Below are positions 8,060 through 64,000 of a stretch of 64,000 nucleotides of DNA, in pieces. Where the stretch lies: sequence record MH791411.1. One strand, 5' to 3'. A program made the position numbers and the translations under genes. Position 1 is the first letter of the stretch; the number at the start of each line of letters is the position of its first letter. The notes beneath the pieces are model-generated. The model saw nothing but the letters and a program-made list of their open reading frames with translations. It did not search any database and was not told the DNA's origin.

Positions 8060-8636
8060 TTTTATTCCTCATATAATCCATATAGCAAGTTCTGCATAGA
8101 CTCTTGTATGATTCATCACCACCAATAAAGACTTTATCAGTACTTTCAACTATACGGGCATTCATAGTGGCTTCTTTGCCACACTTCTGATTCTCACACA
8201 CGTTCTTAAGTTCATGTATGTCATCAGCTATTTCGAACAGTCTTTGTGAACCTTCAAAAAGATTGGATTCAAAATCTGTTCGTATTCCATAACAGGAAAC
8301 ATCAACACCATAATTATCTGCTATATCAGCTAAATGGTCAATTTGTTCTCTGTTTAAAAATTGACATTCATCAACATAGATACTGTTAATGTCAACGTCA
8401 TTTTTGAGTGTTTCTTTAACTTTAAGAAGAACACTAATGTCATTTTTTGGAATTACTTCAGCCACAGCTTCGATGCCAATTCTTGAAGTAATCTTTCCTG
8501 TTCCATAACGATCATCAAGTGCACTGGTTAAGTAAATTACCTTCATTCCATTTTTCTTATGGTTATATGCTTTTTGTAAAAGATGAGTACTTTTACCACT
8601 AGACATACTACCATAGTAATATACTAATTTACCCAT
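8052..8636 (-). CDS. tdk: thymidine kinase
   Basis: YYYGSMSSGKST P-loop, VDECQF, YGIRTDF, Cys pairs, GGDESY. Confidence 0.96.
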   Translation of the reverse strand: MGKLVYYYGSMSSGKSTHLLQKAYNHKKNGMKVIYLTSALDDRYGTGKITSRIGIEAVAEVIPKNDISVLLKVKETLKNDVDINSIYVDECQFLNREQIDHLADIADNYGVDVSCYGIRTDFESNLFEGSQRLFEIADDIHELKNVCENQKCGKEATMNARIVESTDKVFIGGDESYKSLCRTCYMDYMRNKNG

Positions 8637-8967
8637 TTTTAATCCTTAAGTACGTGTGCTTACATTTTAATCTATTACCATAGGATGAAATTGGGATATT
8701 GAACATTTCTATTTTACCCTCTTTTAAAAGACGTAAAATATCTGGATCGTTTTTGGTTTGTACACAATGAAGACCATTGACTTGAATTTCTAAACCATTC
8801 TTCAGAAATTCATAAATCTTCTGTCTACGCTTCCCACCGAAACTTTCATTTCGGATAACATCTCTTAGGTCTTTATATTCTTGTTTTAATTTCCTGTCAA
8901 AAAGTGTTCCATCTTTCTTTCTGATTTCTTCAATACACTTATATTGAGTTTGTCCTCTAAGAGCCAT
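8629..8967 (-). CDS. hypothetical protein
   Basis: 112 aa ORF, coupled. Confidence 0.7.
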   Translation of the reverse strand: MALRGQTQYKCIEEIRKKDGTLFDRKLKQEYKDLRDVIRNESFGGKRRQKIYEFLKNGLEIQVNGLHCVQTKNDPDILRLLKEGKIEMFNIPISSYGNRLKCKHTYLRIKNG

Positions 8968-9436
8968 ATTTGACCTCGTTGGGATATTTCTTCATTAACT
9001 CATGTAAACGTTGAATTTCCTGATTTTTCTTATGTTCTTCATCATACTTCTTAGAAAGATTCTTTCTTGTATTTGTTTCTAATAATCTAAAATTAGTACA
9101 GAATCTATCATTTTTAGCAACGTTCTTACGTAACGCATCAAAAACAGTACTGAAATAGTTATCCAATGGAAAAGAAGTATCAGTGTAATTATAAAAATCC
9201 ATTACATTTGTCATGTTCACATGTTCAATTACCGCACCATTGTGCGTTACAATAAACATTATATCACCATAATTACAATTTGCATCAGTACGGTACAGAT
9301 ATAAATGATCACGTAAATAATCTTTTAATTTATGTTCAATACCACTTTGTTCAGTACTTTGAAATACCAAAACTTCACCATAGATTGTATTACCTTCATA
9401 ATCATTTGGTTCGCGGATAATTGTAAGGTTATACAT
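8957..9436 (-). CDS. hypothetical protein
   Basis: 159 aa ORF. Confidence 0.75.
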   Translation of the reverse strand: MYNLTIIREPNDYEGNTIYGEVLVFQSTEQSGIEHKLKDYLRDHLYLYRTDANCNYGDIMFIVTHNGAVIEHVNMTNVMDFYNYTDTSFPLDNYFSTVFDALRKNVAKNDRFCTNFRLLETNTRKNLSKKYDEEHKKNQEIQRLHELMKKYPNEVKYGS

Positions 9437-9444
9437 ATAACTCC

Positions 9445-9735
9445 TTATACCGGAGATACGGTACTCAGCATTAGTAGAGCAGTGTTTTCATCAATTTCAT
9501 GTTGATTGTCGCACACTAGTGTTTCCAATAGGTCTGGATTGTAATAATAATGTTCATAATCTGTATCATTTGGAATATGGTGATAGGTGAATACAATGTC
9601 AAATACATCATCATCATTTTCACTTTTGAAACGCTTTAATTCTTCTACACTTTCAACAAAACCATACTCTTCAAAAGCAGTAGTACCATCAGTAAGTTTC
9701 ATCCATGCACTTGCGACAATTTTCATAAATTTCAA
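9445..9735 (-). CDS. hypothetical protein
   Basis: 96 aa ORF. Confidence 0.7.
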   Translation of the reverse strand: MKFMKIVASAWMKLTDGTTAFEEYGFVESVEELKRFKSENDDDVFDIVFTYHHIPNDTDYEHYYYNPDLLETLVCDNQHEIDENTALLMLSTVSPV

Positions 9736-9739
9736 ATCC

Positions 9740-10327
9740 TTATTCTTTTGTAATGTTTAGTTTAGAAACGAAATGGTTTTTTGCTTCTTCAAATGTCATT
9801 GAAGTATATACTGGGTTCCAATTATCGTCAAGATCTGTAAGTACTTTAACTTCCATTACATCTTCAGGTGTGTAGAATTGCCATGTGTTATGATCTGGTT
9901 CATAATTAGGGTCTAGTGTGAAAACTGTTCCATTCTGACCATAAACTTGTCCATCCTCTAATAGCTCACGAAATAAGTCTTCCCCAGTTGTTGGGTCTTC
10001 GTATGCATTATAAAAAGGAAAAACAACATTCTCAACATCAGTTCGGGTAGTACCATCGTCTTCATCATATTCAACCAAACGGTCCTGATGAAATACTAGG
10101 TCAATAGCACCAATGCGAGGTTTATTATGTGGAGTTTTGATTTCTTGCTGGGAATTGTAATCCATACGTTCAGTACTGATGAATACACCACTTGGTGTGA
10201 TTTCAATACCAGATACATTTTCTGGTGAATAATAAGAGTCACACATATCATCAATATGCATGTGCTCATGATACACTTCCATTTCAGGGTTCTGCATCAA
10301 CAGTGCTGCTAGGTCTTTTGCTTTCAA
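9740..10327 (-). CDS. hypothetical protein (paralog of 11067..11684)
   Basis: MKAKDLAALL...ITPSGVF...YTPEDV matches MKSHDLAKLL...VTPSGIF...YTPDDI. Confidence 0.8.
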   Translation of the reverse strand: MKAKDLAALLMQNPEMEVYHEHMHIDDMCDSYYSPENVSGIEITPSGVFISTERMDYNSQQEIKTPHNKPRIGAIDLVFHQDRLVEYDEDDGTTRTDVENVVFPFYNAYEDPTTGEDLFRELLEDGQVYGQNGTVFTLDPNYEPDHNTWQFYTPEDVMEVKVLTDLDDNWNPVYTSMTFEEAKNHFVSKLNITKE

Positions 10328-10716
10328 TCTTCAATCTCCATAGAGTCATCACTTTCGTAATCATCACTAGTGTACTTAGTTTTTACCTCAATACCATTCT
10401 CATGAAGGTATGTGATAAAGCCATTACCATGAACGAATTGATTATAATATGTATTTTCTTCTACATGTGAGTCATAATCATCTTCGTAATATGTGGGCAT
10501 TGTAACATCATGACCAGCACTTTGCAAGTACTGGAACAATTCTTTCAGAACTACTTCGATATCACCTTCTTCTGTGCCATAACAATATGCAGGTTCACCG
10601 TGAGTGAATTTGAATCCTTTACAGGAAACTGTATAAATGTCACTCATGTTCATACCACAATCATCACATTCATGTATAGAACAATGCTGGTGGAATTTAA
10701 TCTTTTTGATTTGCAT
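10324..10716 (-). CDS. hypothetical protein, possible metal-binding N-terminus
   Basis: HHCxxHECDDC motif. Confidence 0.7.
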   Translation of the reverse strand: MQIKKIKFHQHCSIHECDDCGMNMSDIYTVSCKGFKFTHGEPAYCYGTEEGDIEVVLKELFQYLQSAGHDVTMPTYYEDDYDSHVEENTYYNQFVHGNGFITYLHENGIEVKTKYTSDDYESDDSMEIED

Positions 10717-11050
10717 TTAGAAAATCCTGTAAAGATGTAGTAGACATTGGACTATCAGCACCATCATACCACAGTGATGTATATGGCTGAACTGAACTAA
10801 TATCAATACAGAATCCTTCACGCTCACATTTTCGAGCGAATTCTTCAGTAGTTAGTTTGTTACCAAAAGAAATCTCAAATTCATAACTAGACATATCAAT
10901 ATCAGTACTGTAAATCAATGTACCATCATATGTAATATGGAGTTTAGAATCTGCGTCAAAAAGACGATCTGAAATAGCTTCATAATCATCTTCAGGAACT
11001 GCTTCAATAAGACGGGCCATTAGTCCAGATGTTACGCGGTAATCACTCAT
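10697..11050 (-). CDS. hypothetical protein
   Basis: 117 aa ORF. Confidence 0.75.
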   Translation of the reverse strand: MSDYRVTSGLMARLIEAVPEDDYEAISDRLFDADSKLHITYDGTLIYSTDIDMSSYEFEISFGNKLTTEEFARKCEREGFCIDISSVQPYTSLWYDGADSPMSTTSLQDFLNANQKD

Positions 11051-11066
11051 TTTTTAATCCTTTTTT

Positions 11067-11684
11067 TTATTTTTCAAGTTTATCAATAATAGAAGGTGAT
11101 ACTTTTACATTGAATTCAGAATCAGGAAAATCTTTAGAAAATGAATCAATTTGTTCTTGTGAAAGTTCTTCTTTTTGTGGAAATAACATTTTAACTAAAT
11201 TTTTACCACATTCAATTGCTTCATCATACGACATAGTTTCCCATGTTCCATGCCAAGTACTAGGTTCATATTCTGTCAGTACAGAAATGAAATCAATATC
11301 ATCGGGTGTATACCAAACAGCATTTTGATTCCCTGATGGTGCTGATTGATTTTTACCTAATAAAACAATTGGCTTTTCATAAGGAATGTTAAATATCAAC
11401 CCAGATTCTAAGTTAAGAACAGTTTGAATAGATGAACCCTCCAATTTTGGAGTAATAGTACCATCCTTAAAGAAAATTTGTACATGACCCAAGAGTGGGG
11501 TTTCATATGGTGTAAGTACATTTTCAGAAACTGATGTGGGTTTTGCCGTTGTGAAAATACCAGATGGGGTGACCATTAATTTATTATCAAAATTCTGATA
11601 ATGCAATTCACTATCCACATCATAATGATAAATGTCTAGATTTGGTTGAGATAGTAGTAATTTTGCTAAATCATGAGATTTCAT
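11067..11684 (-). CDS. hypothetical protein (paralog of 9740..10327)
   Basis: start reassigned to MKSHD at 11684 after GGAG RBS. Confidence 0.8.
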   Translation of the reverse strand: MKSHDLAKLLLSQPNLDIYHYDVDSELHYQNFDNKLMVTPSGIFTTAKPTSVSENVLTPYETPLLGHVQIFFKDGTITPKLEGSSIQTVLNLESGLIFNIPYEKPIVLLGKNQSAPSGNQNAVWYTPDDIDFISVLTEYEPSTWHGTWETMSYDEAIECGKNLVKMLFPQKEELSQEQIDSFSKDFPDSEFNVKVSPSIIDKLEK

Positions 11685-11696
11685 TTTATTTCTCCA

Positions 11697-11725
11697 AAAG
11701 AAAAGGAGAGTCACAATGACTCTCC
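11697..11725 (-). terminator. intrinsic terminator
   Basis: GGAGAGTCA/TGACTCTCC 9-bp stem plus U-tract. Confidence 0.8.
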
Positions 11726-11732
11726 ATATATT

Positions 11733-12173
11733 TTATTGTAAAACTTTGAGTTTGTAAAGCATTCCTTCACAAAAACTCATAATGTCTTCTAGCGTGTTAG
11801 TACTACCATAGTCTTCAGCCTCTTCTAGCATAGCATGAATGGCTTTACATTGACTAACATATTCTTCAAGAATTGGTACACAATCCTCGATAGGGGTAAA
11901 ACGATAACTGTTACCAGTACCTACCTGCAATGCCCCGCGAGTGTTCATAATACCCTCTACAAATGCATCAACGTACTCAGGTAACTCTTTGTATAGTTCA
12001 TCCAATTGTAGGTGCTTCGTGTAGAAATGGCTCTGTAAATGCCAGTTGTGAGCAGCAGCACTTAAAAATAAACTATTCTCAATAAATGTAAGTAGTACTT
12101 CATCATAAGAACTATCTTCTTCAGTATCTCCGATAAAGTCCATTACATGTCGTAAATCATTAATATTTTCCAT
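11733..12173 (-). CDS. ferritin/Dps-like protein
   Basis: AHNWHLQS...HLQLDELY-EL---VDAFVE ferroxidase-type pattern. Confidence 0.75.
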   Translation of the reverse strand: MENINDLRHVMDFIGDTEEDSSYDEVLLTFIENSLFLSAAAHNWHLQSHFYTKHLQLDELYKELPEYVDAFVEGIMNTRGALQVGTGNSYRFTPIEDCVPILEEYVSQCKAIHAMLEEAEDYGSTNTLEDIMSFCEGMLYKLKVLQ

Positions 12174-12203
12174 AAATCTCTCCTTAGAGTTATTCTATGG
12201 TAT

Positions 12204-12632
12204 TTAGTTAATAATAAAGGTAACTTCAGGATTCATTTCTGAAACTGCATTTCTCTTACTTCTATTCCATAGTACTCTATTGTTATATAATGAAGAATCA
12301 CAAATTATAAGTAAGCAATTCCTTAATCTACTTACAGTACTTTGATTACTTAAATCAGTTTCTGTAACAAAAAATACATTATCAGGAACTTCTACAGGAA
12401 TTGATTTATCAAAGAAGAAAACTACAATAGGTCTGTTTGTATGAACTAAATTAATAAAGTCTAAAATACTGTTATAAAATTCAGTTCCTTTGTTTAAACT
12501 TAATGGATCTTTGATTCTCTTCAAATAGGTCTGAACCAAATTATGATCGCTTTTGATTTGATACTCAAAATATTCTTTGAATAACATTTGTGTTAATTCA
12601 GATGTATTGGATATTTTCGTTGTGTTACTCAT
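12204..12632 (-). CDS. hypothetical protein
   Basis: 142 aa ORF directly downstream of non-coding element copy 1. Confidence 0.7.
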   Translation of the reverse strand: MSNTTKISNTSELTQMLFKEYFEYQIKSDHNLVQTYLKRIKDPLSLNKGTEFYNSILDFINLVHTNRPIVVFFFDKSIPVEVPDNVFFVTETDLSNQSTVSRLRNCLLIICDSSLYNNRVLWNRSKRNAVSEMNPEVTFIIN

Positions 12633-12718
12633 TCACTTCGTTCTCTCGTAACTCAAGAAGTCACTACGTTTACTTCGTAAACTAGTTCCTTCTGAAAATG
12701 ATAATGTACTTTAAAAGC

Positions 12719-13287
12719 TTGACGGGATTTGTTGAGGACTATTTCATCCCCCCGCAGGGGAATGAAGGTAATAAAAAAGAGACAATTAAGTCTCTCTTGA
12801 CGATGATGGCATCGGATATTATCGAATTGCGAATTTCTCAAATTTTGGACGGATCTTTCCTGTACCAAAATTTAGAGAGCGAAAGCGGGTTGCTCGGTTT
12901 CTCTCTATCGCAGTCATATGCAACGGTCGCTGGTCTTTTCATCAACAGCACTCAGTACTAAACTCTATTCGATCAAAGTAGTACCTGTTCTCAAATTTTG
13001 GACGCAACTTTCTTGTAAAATCGCGTCCACAATCCTTGAACTCCCTTAGCAAATTCGTAAGGTGCGAACCTTATACATCTATCTAGGAACTCTCTGTGTG
13101 CTTATTGGAGTTCTTTATACAGCCGTGTCGCCGTGATTCGTGGTCTTATCTCGTGTTTGTTTGATTGCCAGTACTCTAACAGGTTTCTTTTGCTGTTCGC
13201 TACAACGGTAAAGCTCATCTATCCTTTACATTTTCAAGAGAAGTAGGTTCTCATTATCCATTTTTCAATGTCCGTTGTCATTTTACA
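12719..13287 (-). ncRNA. candidate large structured ncRNA, copy 1 (about 570 nt, family not recognised)
   Basis: gene-free gap; multiple blocks nearly identical to 63533-64000; stems with G-U-compatible changes on minus strand; own promoter motif at 13294-13321. Confidence 0.7.
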
Positions 13288-13293
13288 ATATAC

Positions 13294-13321
13294 ATTATAT
13301 CACTAGGATGTATTATGTCCC
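13294..13321 (-). promoter_or_regulatory. putative promoter for the ncRNA candidate
   Basis: GGGACAtaatacatcctagTGATATAAT. Confidence 0.7.
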
Positions 13322-13322
13322 G

Positions 13323-13736
13323 TTACATGTATACCTTTTTCAAATCCTTGGAACAACGGTCAAAAATTGTGTTGATGAATTCGACATCCTCTTTGATATT
13401 GGAGTCTATAGCATCATTCTCGTTTCTTGTTGTGTTCCTGTATTTGTGTTCAGGGTGATTGTATACCACCTTGACTACATTATTTAGGTCTACAAAAAAT
13501 GACGATTTTTGCGTATAGGAAGCCTGAAGCTTGATGAGTTTACCATCGTTTTGTAGATTAGTCTTGTGAATTAGTTCTTCAATACCATCTAAATGGCTAT
13601 AGCTATCCTGTTCTTTGACGAATGTAACAGTTACCAGTACTGACTTCTCATCTCCAAAGTCAGAGATATTTTTAACAGCACTGATGATTTCTAAGTTTGA
13701 AAAATCTAATTCTTTTAGCATTACAAATATTTCCAC
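13323..13736 (-). CDS. hypothetical protein
   Basis: 137 aa ORF. Confidence 0.7.
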   Translation of the reverse strand: MEIFVMLKELDFSNLEIISAVKNISDFGDEKSVLVTVTFVKEQDSYSHLDGIEELIHKTNLQNDGKLIKLQASYTQKSSFFVDLNNVVKVVYNHPEHKYRNTTRNENDAIDSNIKEDVEFINTIFDRCSKDLKKVYM

Positions 13737-14077
13737 AAAGTTCGATAAGTGATAATTTCTTCTCTGGTAACAGAAACTTCATAGCACTTAACACCATCAG
13801 TTTCATTTCTGAATGGTTCTGCTGGTCTATCTTCTGTTAAACCTCGTTCATACGTACAATGATAATATTTGTTCGTGTTCATGTCAAGAAAAACTAGATC
13901 AAATTCTTCTGTCCATCGTCTATGCCCTTTACTTTCATTACTAATGATTTTGTACTTAACATCGGGATTGAATGATTCAGTACTGTCATCCCATGTACCA
14001 TAGTCAGTATATTCATCATCTTCATCTAACTCTGCCAGATGCCACATTAACTGCGGTAAAAAGATTTTAGATTTCAT
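13721..14077 (-). CDS. hypothetical protein
   Basis: 118 aa ORF with GGAG RBS. Confidence 0.75.
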   Translation of the reverse strand: MKSKIFLPQLMWHLAELDEDDEYTDYGTWDDSTESFNPDVKYKIISNESKGHRRWTEEFDLVFLDMNTNKYYHCTYERGLTEDRPAEPFRNETDGVKCYEVSVTREEIITYRTLWKYL

Positions 14078-14088
14078 TTATTTTCTCC

Positions 14089-14122
14089 AAAAAAATAGGG
14101 ACTCGATTTCTCAAGTCCCTAT
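14089..14122 (-). terminator. intrinsic terminator
   Basis: ATAGGGACT/AGTCCCTAT stem plus U-tract. Confidence 0.8.
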
Positions 14123-14131
14123 CATAACATA

Positions 14132-14743
14132 TTAATTGTGATTATTCAATTTCTTTTGTTCTTTTTTTAGAGCTTTCATATGTCGTCCAAAATCACGAAC
14201 ATGCCATATATGGTCGGTTTCCCATAGTTCTGTACGTAAACGGCGTTCTTCCAATTCTTCTGGCGTAGGAATTTTAGATTTCTTCTTATCTTTATTGAAA
14301 AAATCATTCATATGTTCTTCCAGTAGATTTCTACCCTTAACTTTTTCCAGGAATTCATCTACTGATTCAGTTTTATTAGAACGAAGACTGTTACAACGTG
14401 AACACATGGTGTTGTAATTTGACTCTAAATCAGGTCCACCCTTAGATGCTAGTTGGTTATGATCTACTGTCATCAGTACTTCATATAGACCACAAACTGC
14501 ATAGACATTTAAGTGAGGTTTACCATATACCGGATCAGTGCTATGTGAACGCTCAATGCGAACTTCAGTGGCTTCAATACCACACGCAACGCATTTACGA
14601 TTCTTAACGAATGTAAGTACTTTTTGTGGGAAGTATCGGAAAGTAACACCGTTATATGTATAGCGTTTCATCTGTGTACTTCTTTGATTTAACTCATCAA
14701 GAAGTGATAGTTTGGCAACATAGTAGACCTGATATTTTGACAT
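14132..14743 (-). CDS. HNH endonuclease family protein
   Basis: CVACG...MTVDHNQLASKGG...NYNTMCSRCN pattern (CxxC, DH, GG, N, CxxCN). Confidence 0.8.
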   Translation of the reverse strand: MSKYQVYYVAKLSLLDELNQRSTQMKRYTYNGVTFRYFPQKVLTFVKNRKCVACGIEATEVRIERSHSTDPVYGKPHLNVYAVCGLYEVLMTVDHNQLASKGGPDLESNYNTMCSRCNSLRSNKTESVDEFLEKVKGRNLLEEHMNDFFNKDKKKSKIPTPEELEERRLRTELWETDHIWHVRDFGRHMKALKKEQKKLNNHN

Positions 14744-14745
14744 TT

Positions 14746-15060
14746 TTAATCCTCGGATTTAATTTTAACCTTAACATCTTGATTTTGTAAATCACGAATA
14801 GTTTTAATTAATGCATCATGTTTTAGTGCACAGTCATTGTACATTGCATCCCATTTTACGAGTACTGCAAGAATTTCAGCACCATCATATCCTCTGAACC
14901 CGTTTTTATCGACCATGATTTTACTTGGTAGTGGTGTATTTTCGTCACAACGTTCAAGTAAGATTTCTTGTTCTACAATTGGCTTAGGTTGATACTTAAT
15001 TTCTTCAGCACAACCACTAATTAATAGAAAAGAAATTGCAAATACTAAAGCGTATTTCAT
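14746..15060 (-). CDS. o-spanin (Rz1-like outer-membrane lipoprotein)
   Basis: lipobox LLISGC, internal Cys, adjacent to i-spanin. Confidence 0.8.
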   Translation of the reverse strand: MKYALVFAISFLLISGCAEEIKYQPKPIVEQEILLERCDENTPLPSKIMVDKNGFRGYDGAEILAVLVKWDAMYNDCALKHDALIKTIRDLQNQDVKVKIKSED

Positions 15061-15431
15061 TTGAATTTATTCCTCGCTGCAAGGGAATTCTGTTTAAGTT
15101 CATTCAGAAGTTTAACGCCATCTTCATCTAGACATACGTTTTTGTAAACTTCTCTTTCTACTATAATAGGCACTTGTGTCTCAATAACTTTAGCATTATC
15201 TTGCATTATCTTTTTGGTTTCTATATAGTTTTTTGCATTTTCTTGCTGCATCTTAGCGAGTGCAGAATCAACTTTCTTTTCTATTTTTTGGTCAATACTT
15301 TCTTTATAACCAGTATAATAAGTATTTGCTGACCATCCACCGTAAACACAACCTGCCATTACTCCTACTACCAAAATTGGTTTCCAATATGGTATTAAAA
15401 CTTTTGAAACAATAATTTCTAGTACACTCAT
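15057..15431 (-). CDS. i-spanin (Rz-like)
   Basis: N-terminal TM, coiled coil, C-terminal CLD motif, overlaps o-spanin start. Confidence 0.8.
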   Translation of the reverse strand: MSVLEIIVSKVLIPYWKPILVVGVMAGCVYGGWSANTYYTGYKESIDQKIEKKVDSALAKMQQENAKNYIETKKIMQDNAKVIETQVPIIVEREVYKNVCLDEDGVKLLNELKQNSLAARNKFK

Positions 15432-15484
15432 AATAACATCTCCTATAGTTGGTAATATTATTTAGAGTGTACTATATTATATGT

Positions 15485-15901
15485 TTACAACATTTTTTGA
15501 ATATGATCTACGAGTTTATACAGTTTAGTGTTTTCATTCTCGTATTCCAAATCAACTTCAACTTTGAATTCTTCTTCAAGTTCCATGATCATTTCAATCC
15601 AGTCAAGCCAATCGAATTTAAATTTTTCCACGACTTCACATTTAGTAAGATGGAAGTTCATTGATACATCTTTTTCGGATGCATTTTTGTCGCGACTTGT
15701 AATGAATTTGACAATTGCTTTTTCAACGTCAGTTAATTCACGAGTGCGATATTCTGGTTCAAGATACCATTCGCCATTATTGATAGCTTCCAACGAAAGT
15801 CTAAGTTCATGCATTAGTTTATAACGATCAGTACTTTTATGGATGCGGTTAACTTCGCGATTCAGTACACGTAGTGCGTCTTTGATTTGTTCGTTTAGCA
15901 T
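15485..15901 (-). CDS. protein with C-terminal acyl-carrier-protein-like domain lacking the Ppant serine
   Basis: FKFDWLDWIEMIMELEEEFKVEV aligns with ACP [23 protein letters not shown]; start at MLNEQ after GAGG RBS. Confidence 0.7.
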   Translation of the reverse strand: MLNEQIKDALRVLNREVNRIHKSTDRYKLMHELRLSLEAINNGEWYLEPEYRTRELTDVEKAIVKFITSRDKNASEKDVSMNFHLTKCEVVEKFKFDWLDWIEMIMELEEEFKVEVDLEYENENTKLYKLVDHIQKML

Positions 15902-15911
15902 AACAATCCTC

Positions 15912-17150
15912 TTATTTTTTACTGTACCATTGCATTTCACGGATATCTAATAGTACCTTCGTAGCCAACTTTATGTTTGGTCGCTTCGGTAGATGGGTCT
16001 TATGATACGCCACATTTCGGATGTAGTCAACCTTTTCGTTGAAATAATCCATAACTTCTTGATACAACCACTTCCCGTTACGAATGTCCATCAACATAGC
16101 AGCATCCGGTCGGTGAACTTGGATGATACCAGTTTCAAGTGCTTCCTGTGCTGTATTCAGCAGCCTGACTGTATGCATTGCGTGTTTACAATCATAACCG
16201 TGGTGTGATTCAAGAATAGCACGTTTGGCATTACGATTCTGCTTCCATTTGTGATAACTCTTACGGTTCTCACTATTTTCTTTGTATTCTTTTTCATTGA
16301 ATTTTACAATGAGTTCAGGACGAACTTTCAATTCTTCTGTAGTACGTTCTTTGTTGAAGTAACGTAGTGAACCATCAGCATTCACTGTACTTTCATTCGG
16401 GTTGATAATTACCCCAAAGATGTTTTCACCGTAATGGATTAGTTCATATCCAGAATTGTAATTCAATAAATTGAAATCACGATCTAATACTTTATCAGTA
16501 CTATAATTATGTACTAAACGTACAAAATGATATTGTTTCAATGCTTGTGTTGAAACTAATTGTAATGAAGTATCACGCATGTATTTTTCAAAATCAATTT
16601 TTGTAGCATTGAATGGGTGAAGATTGGATTTATTCAAACGGTCAACCAAATACTGCGGAAATGTATCATACATCCATGAAAGTACTTCGTCAACTGGATG
16701 TTCTTCTAAAATTTCATTTAGTTTACGTTCAGCAATTCGTTCCTTATCGAGCCAGCCGTGGTGATTAGACATACGCTTAACCTGATTGTATGCATATCCA
16801 CTGTATGAGTGTGCAATCTTTGAACTCAATAATTGCTGATTGAATGAGCGTAGATAGTCATAGATTTCAGTACTTTCTACGATGTGTTCCGGTTTAACCC
16901 ATAGTGATTCAAGAATGTTTGGGTTAGCTTCAGTATACAGACTTAAGTACTGATTGATTTCATAAAATTTAGTATCTTCTTCAGAAGTATCTGAAACTTC
17001 CTTAACATTAAAAAAAGGAGTTAGGATATATTCTTTGTTTGCAAGGAAGATACCACGATAATCTGTATCACTTTCTGGTGTGCTTGTGCCATACGCCTGT
17101 GAACCAGCTAAGTGTTTCACAATAGTTTGTTCTAGAAAATTGTTTTTCAT
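15912..17150 (-). CDS. Pol-beta superfamily nucleotidyltransferase (YcgL/RlaP-like)
   Basis: LAGSQAYGTSTPESDTDYRGIF, ANPNILE, GYDCKHAMHTVRLL...IRNG motifs. Confidence 0.85.
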   Translation of the reverse strand: MKNNFLEQTIVKHLAGSQAYGTSTPESDTDYRGIFLANKEYILTPFFNVKEVSDTSEEDTKFYEINQYLSLYTEANPNILESLWVKPEHIVESTEIYDYLRSFNQQLLSSKIAHSYSGYAYNQVKRMSNHHGWLDKERIAERKLNEILEEHPVDEVLSWMYDTFPQYLVDRLNKSNLHPFNATKIDFEKYMRDTSLQLVSTQALKQYHFVRLVHNYSTDKVLDRDFNLLNYNSGYELIHYGENIFGVIINPNESTVNADGSLRYFNKERTTEELKVRPELIVKFNEKEYKENSENRKSYHKWKQNRNAKRAILESHHGYDCKHAMHTVRLLNTAQEALETGIIQVHRPDAAMLMDIRNGKWLYQEVMDYFNEKVDYIRNVAYHKTHLPKRPNIKLATKVLLDIREMQWYSKK

Positions 17151-17548
17151 AAGTAAATCGTTAACTCCTTTAGAAAACCATTATAGTATCGTTTAAAATC
17201 ATGATCCAGTACTTGATAGTCATTGTAACTAAATCCAAGATTGATGATGGTATCTTCTTGGAAGAATTTCTCTTCATTCATTACTTCGATGGGTTCGTAT
17301 TCTTTCCCACCTTTACATACTTTAGTAAAGAACATACCATCATTGTTAATTTCAACGTACATGAAATTATTTTCTGGATCTCGTGGACACACAATGTTTA
17401 GTGAACTTGTCCCATTGTTATTATATTCGTATGAAATAATATCAAAAGAATCGATGCCATAACATTTGGACTTTTCTTTGTCACCAAAGACTTTTCTATC
17501 TGTACTCATATTGCGTATAGTACTGTAGATATCATCGATTGTAGTCAT
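17147..17548 (-). CDS. hypothetical protein (EE-FFQ paralog family)
   Basis: MNEEKFFQEDT motif. Confidence 0.75.
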   Translation of the reverse strand: MTTIDDIYSTIRNMSTDRKVFGDKEKSKCYGIDSFDIISYEYNNNGTSSLNIVCPRDPENNFMYVEINNDGMFFTKVCKGGKEYEPIEVMNEEKFFQEDTIINLGFSYNDYQVLDHDFKRYYNGFLKELTIYL

Positions 17549-17550
17549 AA

Positions 17551-18060
17551 TTAACCACCGTACTTTGACTTATATGTTTCTAAAGATAAAGAAATGCGAT
17601 TTTGCTTTTTAATTCTTTCATCAATATCCTTTGAATTCTTAACACTTCTGTATACATCAGCTAATAAATTATAATCTTCTTTATTTGAGCTATGTAATGC
17701 CCAACCTATATCTGTTTTGATTCGAACATATGCTTTATTTGATGTGAAATAAAAATTGAATCCGTTAGACCCATCAAAAATATCATAAGTATTTACCCAA
17801 TCTCCATAAGGAAAACTCATTGGTACTGACTCATAATCAATGGTGATATCCGATAAATTTTTAGAACAGTACTTTACAAAGTGGTAAACAATCGGATCAC
17901 ATTTTGATAATTCGTATTTGTATTCAATGATAGTTTTTCTATTAGTATCATTGATGGCATATTCTTTTATCAATGGACTTTTTTTGATGATAAGAGTCCA
18001 TAGAAACGATTCTAATCCAGTTTCATCAACTTTTTCTTTCTTTTTGAAAAATGAAATCAT
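17551..18060 (-). CDS. hypothetical protein, tandem paralog 1 of 3
   Basis: D-R---IE-KY-LSK motif shared with next two ORFs. Confidence 0.8.
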   Translation of the reverse strand: MISFFKKKEKVDETGLESFLWTLIIKKSPLIKEYAINDTNRKTIIEYKYELSKCDPIVYHFVKYCSKNLSDITIDYESVPMSFPYGDWVNTYDIFDGSNGFNFYFTSNKAYVRIKTDIGWALHSSNKEDYNLLADVYRSVKNSKDIDERIKKQNRISLSLETYKSKYGG

Positions 18061-18578
18061 TTATATAAACCCTTAATTTTCTGTCTATTATGTATATCAT
18101 TTTGCTGAATTTTCAAATTAGTAAGATTGTGTCTTACACCTTCAACGCCACGCATTATTTGTAACATAATTAGTGATTCGTCATATGTTAGAACATTGCT
18201 ATTATTATCGATATATACTTTCACTCCACTTTCAAGATAATCATTTTCTTTGGAGTTAAAGTTTCTAATAGCAAACTTAACGCCATTTGTTGCATCACTG
18301 AATACATATCGTTCCGCACCGTAGAATGTTTTTCCACGAAATAAACCGCCTTCTTCAAACTTCCAACGACTGGATTCATAATCATTAACGTAATCAATGA
18401 TTAATGGTAGCAAAGGGTGTTTGCTCAATTTATATTTTGCTTCTAACAGAACACGACGATCTTGATCTGTATTGATGATATCTTTAAGTGTGAAACTTTT
18501 TGATATAATTTTAAAGATAATTTCATGCCAAATTAAAGTACTGTTTTGTTTTCCAACTGGGCCAAAAAACATATTCAT
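18057..18578 (-). CDS. hypothetical protein, tandem paralog 2 of 3
   Basis: DQDRRVLLEAKYKLSK. Confidence 0.8.
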   Translation of the reverse strand: MNMFFGPVGKQNSTLIWHEIIFKIISKSFTLKDIINTDQDRRVLLEAKYKLSKHPLLPLIIDYVNDYESSRWKFEEGGLFRGKTFYGAERYVFSDATNGVKFAIRNFNSKENDYLESGVKVYIDNNSNVLTYDESLIMLQIMRGVEGVRHNLTNLKIQQNDIHNRQKIKGLYK

Positions 18579-18584
18579 TCCTCA

Positions 18585-19151
18585 TTAGTATAAATCAGTA
18601 ATGTCTTTGTATGCATTAATCTGTTTTTGTTGTAATGAAAGTTCATTGAGTTTAGTTACCATTTTATCTACACCAACACGTATATAGAAAATAATAAATG
18701 AATCTAACTTGCCTAGAGTAATTCTTGAACTGTAAGTTGAAAGTTTTCTTGCATAAACATAAATTTCTTCTTCACTTGGTAAACGTTTCTCAATCAGCAA
18801 GTTTTCCACACCATTCGGCTCATAATCAATCTCGAACTCTACGCCTATCACAGTATCTTGAATGATATCAGTATATGAACCACCGAAAAAAAACTCTCTT
18901 GGTTTGGTTCTCCAACGAGGACTAAATGGGTCAGATGCGTATTCTTTTACAAATTTGTAAAAGGACATTTTACTGAGCATATACTTCATCTCAATTAGTG
19001 CTTTGCGGTCATCATCAGTTTTAAACTCTGCTTTGAGCGATGGACTTTTACACAGTAACTTAACTAAATTGTTGTACATCTTTAATGTACGTTGGTCTTT
19101 CATTTCTTGGATTTTGTGACGCTTTGGTGGTGGTAGTAAAGATTTGACCAT
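18585..19151 (-). CDS. hypothetical protein, tandem paralog 3 of 3
   Basis: DDDRKALIEMKYMLSK. Confidence 0.8.
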   Translation of the reverse strand: MVKSLLPPPKRHKIQEMKDQRTLKMYNNLVKLLCKSPSLKAEFKTDDDRKALIEMKYMLSKMSFYKFVKEYASDPFSPRWRTKPREFFFGGSYTDIIQDTVIGVEFEIDYEPNGVENLLIEKRLPSEEEIYVYARKLSTYSSRITLGKLDSFIIFYIRVGVDKMVTKLNELSLQQKQINAYKDITDLY

Positions 19152-19174
19152 AATTTCCTCCTGTATTTTCTAGC

Positions 19175-19203
19175 ATTATACACATAAAAGAAAAGCCCGT
19201 CAA
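19175..19203 (-). promoter_or_regulatory. sigma70-type promoter overlapping terminator
   Basis: TTGACG-17 nt-TATAAT with TG extension. Confidence 0.75.
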
Positions 19204-63532: not shown

Positions 63533-64000
63533 TTGACGGGGTTTGCTTGAGCATATTTCATCCCCCCCGCAGGGGAAAGAACAAAAAAAGTTTGACGCTG
63601 GTGGCCTTCACATAGTTCATATCACGAATTCTCTTACGAGGCGAAAGCGGGTTGCTCTGTTTCTCTCTATCGCGGTTCTTGTAGCAACGGTCGTCGGTCT
63701 TAAACATCCCGACACATAATACAAATACCATATGACCAGTACTTGTATTTGATTTCACGAATTTTGGACGCAACTATATTGTATAAATTACGACCGCAAA
63801 TTTCTCATGAAATCTCCCTTAGATAATTGGTAAGGTGCGATCCTTATATGTCTATCGAGGAACTCTCTTTATCCTATTGGAGTTCTTTATACAGCCGCAT
63901 TGCCGTGAGTGGTTCAAACTATGCCATCATCTAACGGGTTTCATTTGCTGTTCGTACTGAAAGGACTACTCATCTACCCTCTACTTTTCGAGTGGATTAG
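63533..64000 (-). ncRNA. candidate large structured ncRNA, copy 2 (5' end beyond window)
   Basis: collinear conserved blocks with 12719-13260, e.g. 63641-63676 vs 12879-12914 (34/36) and 63875-63897 vs 13103-13125 (23/23). Confidence 0.7.

Follow-up and report, generated by a model that had tools for sequence, protein, structure and literature searches.

A Gene for a Structured Non-coding RNA with a Swappable Arm Module at Syntenic Loci of Jumbo Phages Related to 121Q and PBECO4

Introduction

What kind of element occurs twice in one stretch of phage DNA, with a long hairpin in one copy, a short one in the other, and different genes downstream of each? The stretch analyzed here is 64,000 nt long (hereafter the window) and corresponds to positions 186001-250000 of record MH791411.1, so that a window position is the record position minus 186000. 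A preliminary description made from the sequence alone had read the two copies as a variable-length peripheral helix on a conserved core with unrelated neighbors, and had favored a trans-acting or self-contained, possibly mobile RNA over a cis-regulatory leader. The window was assigned at 100% identity to Escherichia phage Ecwhy_1 (MH791411.1), genus Asteriusvirus, which belongs to the 121Q/PBECO4 group of jumbo phages with genomes of ~350 kb. All long ORFs of the window lie on its minus strand, and no tRNA genes were found within the 64 kb.

Results and Discussion

Two Copies of the Element in the Window

The conserved core of copy 1, which lies at the E locus by synteny, spans 12719-13247 on the minus strand, and that of copy 2, the D-locus paralogue, spans 63533-64000 on the same strand as a full-length nhmmer match. 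Since the copy 2 core ends at ~64001, the window contains nearly all of it; the 5' leader of its RNA lies beyond the window at window-equivalent 64002-64071 (minus strand) and was read from MH791411.1. The two copies share 77% identity across ~530 nt, and each occupies a gene-free gap of ~690 nt. The annotations at both loci confirmed that the downstream genes differ, as had been described: copy 1 is followed by a hypothetical gene and a Dps-like gene, and copy 2 by a hypothetical gene (an unknown-function entry in PHROGs), a DNA methyltransferase gene and a cytidylyltransferase gene, the latter so named in related phages and called "ribonucleotide reductase A" in Ecwhy_1. An HNH endonuclease gene (14132-14743, minus strand) is found ~900 nt from copy 1 and is absent from the examined flanks of the other copies.

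An 87-aa plus-strand ORF (window 12698-12961) overlaps the copy 1 RNA gene, and up to 4-5 "hypothetical proteins" are annotated across the RNA-gene gaps in several phage records. These annotations, the 87-aa ORF included, are almost certainly spurious, a point of practical consequence in that many GenBank records carry such "hypothetical proteins" over these 0.7-kb gaps.

A Non-coding RNA Family of Jumbo Phages

Ecwhy_1 carries four copies of the element, at ~1.3, 113.9, 199.0 (copy 1), and 249.8 kb (copy 2), all on one strand. BLAST located the element in 62-72 phage records, at four places per Asteriusvirus genome and five in other genera, and the copies within each of six genomes (27 copies in all) share one strand. 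A motif scan of IMG/VR returned 59 stretches, 57 of them profile-confirmed, and every one came from a contig of 345-378 kb or from a fragment of such a phage.

Protein coding was considered and rejected, in that the longest ORFs (26-97 aa) fall at differing places with none conserved and 84% of pairwise indels have lengths not divisible by 3. A search of the whole window against Rfam 15 (4227 models, among them GOLLD, ROOL, OLE, HEARO, raiA, group I and II introns, RNase P, 6S, and tmRNA) gave no match at the gathering threshold, and at E<=10 over both strands of 12400-13600 it gave three chance-level matches only, to unrelated small RNAs. No description of the RNA was found in the literature. 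The element is therefore an RNA class absent from Rfam and from the searchable literature. Taken together, these data and the covariation described below show it to be a gene for a structured non-coding RNA of ~500-530 nt in jumbo phages of the 121Q/PBECO4-GAP32-BF-7t3-XaC1 clade.

Fold and Covariation

The fold was derived from an alignment of 27 full-length copies, all from Ecwhy_1, Cronobacter GAP32, Serratia BF, Erwinia Kaldavass, Salmonella 7t3, and Xanthomonas XaC1, with a larger set of 71 non-redundant copies used for curated pairs. RNAalifold placed 62 pairs in the 27 copies, 36 of which showed double compensatory changes. Across the 71 copies, the 56 curated pairs were canonical in 98.1% of cases, compared with 73% for column shuffles and 29-42% for slid partners, and 45 of the 56 occurred as at least two Watson-Crick types. 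RNAalifold together with a covariation scan that allows crossing helices supported at least 13 covarying helices, three of which form pseudoknots. A comparison of copies 1 and 2 alone already reveals compensatory changes, namely in Pc, Pg, H1, Pl, and Pm. Judged by this covariation, the predicted fold is real and elaborate.

All features of copy 2 that follow lie on the minus strand. The central pseudoknotted domain, delimited by covariation counts, spans 63616-63749. Within it, pseudoknot Pc joins the 7-nt loop of hairpin H1 to a strand 150 nt away, with 488 Watson-Crick cells against ~9 others in the 71 copies; in copy 2 its strands are 63616-63622 and 63730-63736 (the H1 loop), and H1 itself pairs 63718-63729 with 63738-63749. 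Helix P5 (63623-63627/63670-63674) encloses H7 (63643-63647/63663-63667), whose loop pairs downstream, past P5, to form pseudoknot Pe (63651-63655/63684-63688), and Pg follows at 63693-63696/63711-63713. The promoter-proximal domain (63830-64000) comprises Ph, H13, Pi, Pj, Pk, Pl, and Pm, with H13 linking it to the central domain as the third pseudoknot. The pseudoknot status of H13 is the weakest of the three because Pb, the helix that it crossed, was later dropped. Pb and Pa, two long-range helices proposed by RNAalifold in the plus reading, were both discarded, as neither shows a double compensatory change or holds up in the minus reading.

The 3' block of copy 2 (63534-63597) contains two invariant CGUCA motifs, which in plus letters read TGACG at 63534-63538 and 63593-63597, a C4-UGC-G6 hairpin at ~63556-63583, and a U7 run at 63583-63589 without a local terminator stem. 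We also considered a GNRA-tetraloop reading of GCGAAAGC and rejected it, as its GAAAG pairs with a CUCUC 16 nt away and this pairing covaries (ACUGG/CCAGU, GGAAG/CUUCC).

Strand, Promoters and Ends

A minus-strand match to a sigma-70-type promoter was present in all 27 copies, 42-113 nt past the core edge. Its extended -10, TGnTATAAT, was found in 21 of the 22 non-Xanthomonas copies and as TGnTACAAT in one, and the XaC1 copies had TATACT or a TG-type hexamer 8 nt from the edge. For copy 1, the promoter scan placed GGGACA-16-TGATATAAT at 13294-13321 and a second promoter, ATGACA-17-GATAAT, at 13253-13281, both on the minus strand. The same promoter type had been anticipated for copy 2 past the end of the window, and the scan located it there, on the minus strand, as GAGACA-16-TGATATAAT at window-equivalent 64072-64101. 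No conserved plus-strand promoter was found in the 27 copies, and left-side candidates were few and weak.

In the whole Ecwhy_1 genome, the minus strand has 78 occurrences of TGnTATAAT and the plus strand 15, with ~22 expected by composition; GAP32 mirrors this bias (62 vs. 18) and has one such motif beside each of its five copies. The motif serves as the early-promoter signature of the phage, and its positions amount to a ready-made early-promoter map for Asteriusvirus. Two other motifs were set aside: TTGACG as a plus-strand -35, for which there is no -10 at a consistent spacing and which is invariant together with its surroundings, and the T4-type late promoter TATAAATA, which occurs three times on the plus strand and seven times on the minus strand of the genome and at none of the elements.

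The helices likewise bear on strand. In a stringent helix scan, where A.C in plus letters (G.U in the minus-strand RNA) was scored as wobble in the minus reading, the covarying pairs numbered 42 for minus and 30 for plus with the 27 copies, and 47 and 42, respectively, with the 71 copies; G-run artifacts made up 5 of the 15 plus-reading helices in the 71-copy scan. Helices H1, H7, P5, and H4 require the minus reading, and the C4-UGC-G6 hairpin at the 3' end was the more stable in that reading in 25 of 27 copies. An initial plus-strand reading, antisense to the genes, was withdrawn after the promoter survey and these wobble-specific scans. At the level of sequence, promoters and helices together show a predicted RNA gene transcribed from the minus strand of the window by host RNA polymerase, from an early-type promoter of its own.

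The strand signals were not unanimous, since three promoter-proximal hairpins favor the plus strand. Hairpins Ph and Pi and the interior of Pk hold conserved G.T (in plus letters), and in 26-27 of the 27 copies they are more stable on the plus strand; they are located at window positions 13055-13185 in copy 1 and 63828-63940 in copy 2, alignment columns 432-589. Single-sequence and alifold energies, in addition, were about equal on both strands. A functional RNA made from the plus strand, or a second, antisense RNA over the promoter-proximal domain, would agree with these observations. The conserved G.T positions lie at helix ends, however, where they are perhaps not pairs, and may denote either an antisense RNA or conserved A.C appositions. 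As such a transcript would also lack a conserved promoter, and as H1, H7, P5, H4, and the 3' hairpin need the minus reading, we regard transcription of the functional RNA, or of such an antisense RNA, from the plus strand as improbable and describe the gene as a minus-strand gene in what follows.

The ends of the RNA differ among copies. Sequence and alignment revealed a terminator-like hairpin in copy 1, GAGAC-UUAAUU-GUCUC followed by U6 (12773-12794, minus strand), which a consensus terminator scan had missed; such a hairpin with a U-run is present in 13 of the 27 copies and absent from copy 2, which has the U7 run alone. Copy 2 and its orthologues have a 12-bp hairpin with a U-run (64041-64069) within 3 nt of the promoter -10, so that transcripts from the copy 2 promoter would start with a terminator-like stem; this hairpin doubles as the terminator of the upstream gene and is so annotated in GAP32. 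Contigs from four RNA-labeled sequencing runs over 11000-15000 gave patchy cover of genes and element alike, from which strand, ends, and level could not be read. In one RNA-seq contig (run X4), the element sequence gives way to an Illumina adapter at 12893, a fragment end inside the element that is uninformative by itself.

A Module Carried on Either of Two Arms

The contrast between a long hairpin in copy 1 and a short one in copy 2, between the same flanks, proved exact to the base. Copy 1 reads CGAATT (12830-12835), a 43-nt hairpin TCTCAAATTTTGG...CCAAAATTTAGAGA (12836-12878), and GCGAAAGC (12879-12886), and copy 2 reads CGAATT (63625-63630), CTC-TTAC-GAG (63631-63640), and GCGAAAGC (63641-63648). 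This place, which we call site 1 and which is closed by the covarying helix Pd, is one of the two main length-variable places in the core; the other, site 2, lies ~150 nt off on helix H4. Either arm is a stub or a hairpin of 35-65 nt, and the long form bears a sequence-conserved 25-nt module that reads AATTTTGGACGGATCTATATTGTA in plus letters and roughly UACAAUAUAGAUCCGUCCAAAAUU in the RNA sense.

Copy 2 has the module at site 2 only (plus letters AATTTTGGACGCAACTATATTGTA, 63760-63783), and its site-1 arm is accordingly a 3-bp stub. The latter (63630-63641, minus strand) comprises a stem of 3-4 bp, a 4-nt loop, and no module, with a stability no better than that of shuffles, and the site-2 arm (63751-63814, minus strand) consists of H4 enclosing a ~56-nt hairpin with the module (-15.5 kcal/mol, z -3.3). 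Copy 1 bears the module twice: in a long site-1 arm (12835-12879, minus strand), with a folding energy of -16.9 kcal/mol (z -3.7) for the minus strand and -17.7 (z -4.0) for the plus strand, and in its site-2 arm (12987-13041, minus strand; -25.4 kcal/mol, z -6.7).

Placement of the module among 62 non-redundant phage copies followed a one-arm-or-the-other pattern (Fisher p 9e-8, uncorrected for phylogeny): 22 copies had it at site 1 only, 30 at site 2 only, four, including copy 1, at both, and six at neither. All nine chromosomal copies, described below, have it at both sites. A general role of the module as a promoter or protein site was rejected, as it is absent outside the elements from two whole phage genomes. 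Copy 2 is of the site-2-only type, and the site-1 stub is common to all of its orthologues in other Enterobacterales phages; the copy 2 hairpin has thus not been randomly remodeled. A variable peripheral arm on a conserved core was therefore a sound description, given that the core covaries and the arm is stub or long among paralogues. The term "remodeled" captures that the arm differs, but is better replaced by the presence or absence of a discrete module, which copy 2 bears on its other arm. Of two alternative docking arms, the copy 2 stub is one in its empty form, and the module-swap pattern suggests that the two arms lie close together in three dimensions.

Synteny and Spacing of the Loci

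Clustering of the flanking ORFs placed the copies at five loci (A-E), 50-110 kb apart and syntenic across six phage genera, each with a downstream gene set unrelated to those of the other four. The two window copies have different neighbors because they are paralogues occupying two of these loci. In a tree of the family, the D and E types form old clades, and other paralogues cluster by genome within Ecwhy_1, 7t3, and XaC1, which points to some gene conversion.

These relationships bear directly on whether the element is mobile, as the preliminary description had thought possible. An autonomous element, MITE-like or a retro-element, inserted beside unrelated genes would account for the multiple copies, for the different neighbors of the two window copies, and for the additional copies in bacterial islands. 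Five old paralogous loci that keep their synteny from Asteriusvirus to a Xanthomonas phage, with one orientation for all copies in a genome, indicate instead that the elements are not mobile in phages, and the island copies are single and sit, cargo-like, inside the island next to its integrase. The autonomous mobile reading is largely refuted by this synteny, and we consider it highly improbable.

Synteny likewise separates a self-contained gene from a cis-regulatory 5' leader, that is, a riboswitch or attenuator of the co-directional genes downstream, which for copy 2 would be the hypothetical, methyltransferase, and cytidylyltransferase genes. Co-directional genes follow the element at four of the five loci, and the copy 2 locus always reads hypothetical-methyltransferase-cytidylyltransferase/RNA/two hypothetical genes. 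Homologues upstream of one gene family, which had been named as the pattern contrary to a trans-acting RNA, are thus the rule among copy 2 orthologues, but not for a family that occupies five loci with unrelated genes. The hairpin and U-run that end half of the copies could serve a leader as expression platform, and the interval from each window copy to the gene downstream of it yielded no sigma-70 promoter in a consensus scan. At the B locus, however, the RNA gene lies between a baseplate-hub operon and an endoVII gene, both on the opposite strand, and although it has no co-directional downstream gene it keeps its promoter, its full core, and its terminator-like hairpin; a hairpin followed by a U-run ends every B copy. 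The RNA there is a self-contained gene and not a leader. Further points against a leader are the five unrelated downstream gene sets, the island copies, which converge on a cI-like repressor gene, and a TTGACA box for the next gene after the element in several genera (seen by eye). A search for alternative pairing that would compete with the U-run hairpin (present in 13 of 27 copies; copy 2 has U7 only) found none. A leader role is excluded at the B locus and not strictly at that of copy 2, and we judge it very unlikely for the element as such. The preference for a self-contained or trans-acting RNA over a leader holds for self-containment, on the strength of a promoter in 27 of 27 copies and of the B locus, and the D locus leaves some room for co-transcription: copy 2 lacks a hairpin terminator, the genes that follow it are always the same, and transcription may run on into them.

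The copies are also more evenly spaced than chance. In four genomes with five copies the minimum gap was 52-56 kb (P 0.003-0.005 per genome, the genomes being syntenic and not independent). All copies are oriented with the ~80% of genes that share one direction, with the strand switch falling at the B copy. Action in trans does not account for this spacing. One reading that would account for it is that the elements are RNA-primed replication origins, in which a folded early transcript would form a persistent R-loop near the G6/C4 3' block and prime DNA synthesis, in the manner of ColE1 RNA II and the T4 oriF and oriG transcripts. Consistent with origins are the four to five copies in the one orientation of most genes, their even spacing, the location of one copy right where the strand switches, with endoVII and gp46-like recombination genes next to it, the invariant G6 run in the hairpin at the RNA 3' end, and a host-type early promoter at each of the 27 copies, which without any conserved ORF have the features of a non-coding transcript made by host polymerase. 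Against them, GC skew tracks gene orientation and shows no inflection at copies A, C, and D; three pseudoknots and many invariant loops exceed the needs of known primer RNAs; the supposed priming block comes after a terminator-like hairpin and U-run in 13 of 27 copies; and widely spaced direct repeats could be simply what survives deletion. We take replication origins to be the main rival to action in trans, though a rather unlikely explanation.

Copies in Bacterial Integrative Islands

A motif scan of one genome per species in 185,579 species, followed by a profile search, returned full-length single copies in nine bacterial contigs. Eight were from Enterobacterales, including Enterobacter chinensis, Silvania, Citrobacter amalonaticus, two Serratia, and Buttiauxella, and the ninth was a 2.8-kb contig binned as Clostridium. 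Complete E. coli genomes carried a copy in 2 of 5,426 cases. The bacterial copies sit, as cargo, in small integrative islands that lack structural genes.

The island of E. chinensis is ~11 kb long and lies between nadC and ppdD (~8400-19200 of the stretch 98000-117500 of NZ_JARDVI010000005.1). It contains a large serine recombinase gene, the RNA, a cI-like S24 repressor, a Cro-like HTH protein, and unknown genes, together with a resolvase, an LprI-like gene, a UvrD_C fragment, and a DarT/DarG-like toxin-antitoxin defense pair; for one of its proteins, I1 (286 aa), Pfam, PHROG, and Atlas gave no lead. This island could be a satellite or defense island linked to jumbo phages. In Serratia fonticola (NZ_CP183218.1, stretch 4232000-4251900, positions 8107-12168), a serine recombinase gene and two tandem ParB_N/RepB-like genes are followed by the RNA, beside tilS, with Hcp and DUF4225 cargo further left. 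The ~10-kb island of E. coli LR-29-1 (NZ_AP027515.1; 3200-13600 of the stretch examined) lies beside the SRP RNA gene ffs and carries an RNA copy, recombinases, dual-OB, DUF488, and DUF4326 genes, and an IS3. The DUF4326 protein is the only one of that island with a phage homologue, an Ecwhy_1/GAP32 ORF of ~40% identity.

For the origin explanation, the islands would carry a copy in order to replicate after excision or to hijack the phage replisome, and it is consistent with this that chromosomal copies lie beside large serine recombinase or ParB/RepB-like genes in islands without a recognizable replicase. In its fuller form, the RNAs would be the cis-acting cores of multi-origin replication in jumbo phages, with elaborately folded early transcripts of host polymerase licensing R-loop priming at four to five evenly spaced sites, and small integrative defense islands of Enterobacterales, such as that with DarTG, would have captured a copy to sense an infecting jumbo phage or be amplified by it; this fuller form we find rather doubtful.

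Proposed Function of the RNA

The account that we favor, as somewhat probable overall, is a stand-alone, minus-strand structured RNA gene with a modular arm, non-mobile in phages, for which action in trans is the leading function. The many invariant loops and a module usable from either arm imply that three-dimensional shape matters, which favors a trans role. Under this account, transcription by host polymerase would begin in the first minutes of infection, and several strong promoters would make the product abundant; the RNA would then act in trans, as a ribonucleoprotein or an RNA-only assembly, and a phage or host partner would dock on its conserved loops and module. That the RNA acts in this way as an abundant early species is, taken separately, a tentative proposal, though quite a possible one.

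Large non-coding RNAs with intricate folds make up very few known classes, each of which has led to new biology or structure. Because the present RNA occurs in culturable E. coli phages (121Q, PBECO4, phAPEC6, and relatives), expression studies, knock-outs, pull-downs, and cryo-EM are straightforward. Three handles on function are at hand, namely old paralogues kept at evenly spaced loci, a sequence-conserved module on either of two arms, and copies in small integrative islands with anti-phage cargo.

Comparison with Known Systems

Peripheral elements are swapped in RNase P RNA and group I introns, where a docking hairpin is grafted on alternative helices of a conserved core. A module at site 1 or site 2 resembles this as an architectural analogy only, and the Rfam models of RNase P RNA and of group I and II introns were absent among the matches. 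ColE1 RNA II, of ~550 nt and with a G-run, acts in cis at a fixed place in the DNA, and T4 has several dispersed origins, with oriF and oriG transcripts that prime DNA synthesis. These are, like the product predicted here, folded non-coding transcripts made by host polymerase, but the structure of the new RNA is far more elaborate and more conserved, and R-loop formation and priming are in its case only proposed. The RNAI model gave no match at E<=10 over 12400-13600, and Rfam holds no RNA II model.

Long non-coding RNAs occur in a related jumbo-phage clade. In the Pseudomonas jumbo phage PA5oct, RNA-seq revealed four ORF-free transcripts of 236-619 nt, two of which account for 2-5% of phage reads from early infection onwards (PMC7318152). 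Homology to them was rejected: profiles of the present family gave no nhmmer match at E<1 to the four PA5oct loci, and the best values with nhmmer --max against lncRNA001-004 were E 2.2-6.6, over short chance segments. The PA5oct RNAs are at most functional analogues of the RNA described here.

Among known RNAs, those most similar in kind are the large ornate ones, GOLLD, ROOL, and OLE. They too are structured, several hundred nucleotides long, rich in covarying helices and pseudoknots, and borne by phages or prophage-like elements. The new RNA differs from them in that it has no sequence or structure match to any Rfam 15 model and in its hosts, being found in jumbo myoviruses of Enterobacterales and Xanthomonas, whereas the GOLLD, ROOL, and OLE group is found in Lactobacillales or rumen phages. 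Unlike them, it also lies in a window without tRNA genes and has four to five diverged paralogues at evenly spaced, syntenic loci, with early promoters of their own and a swappable module. GOLLD, ROOL, and OLE form RNA-only homo-oligomers (PMC12286853), and such assemblies could be a model for the role of the conserved loops and the swappable arm in the RNA of these jumbo phages.
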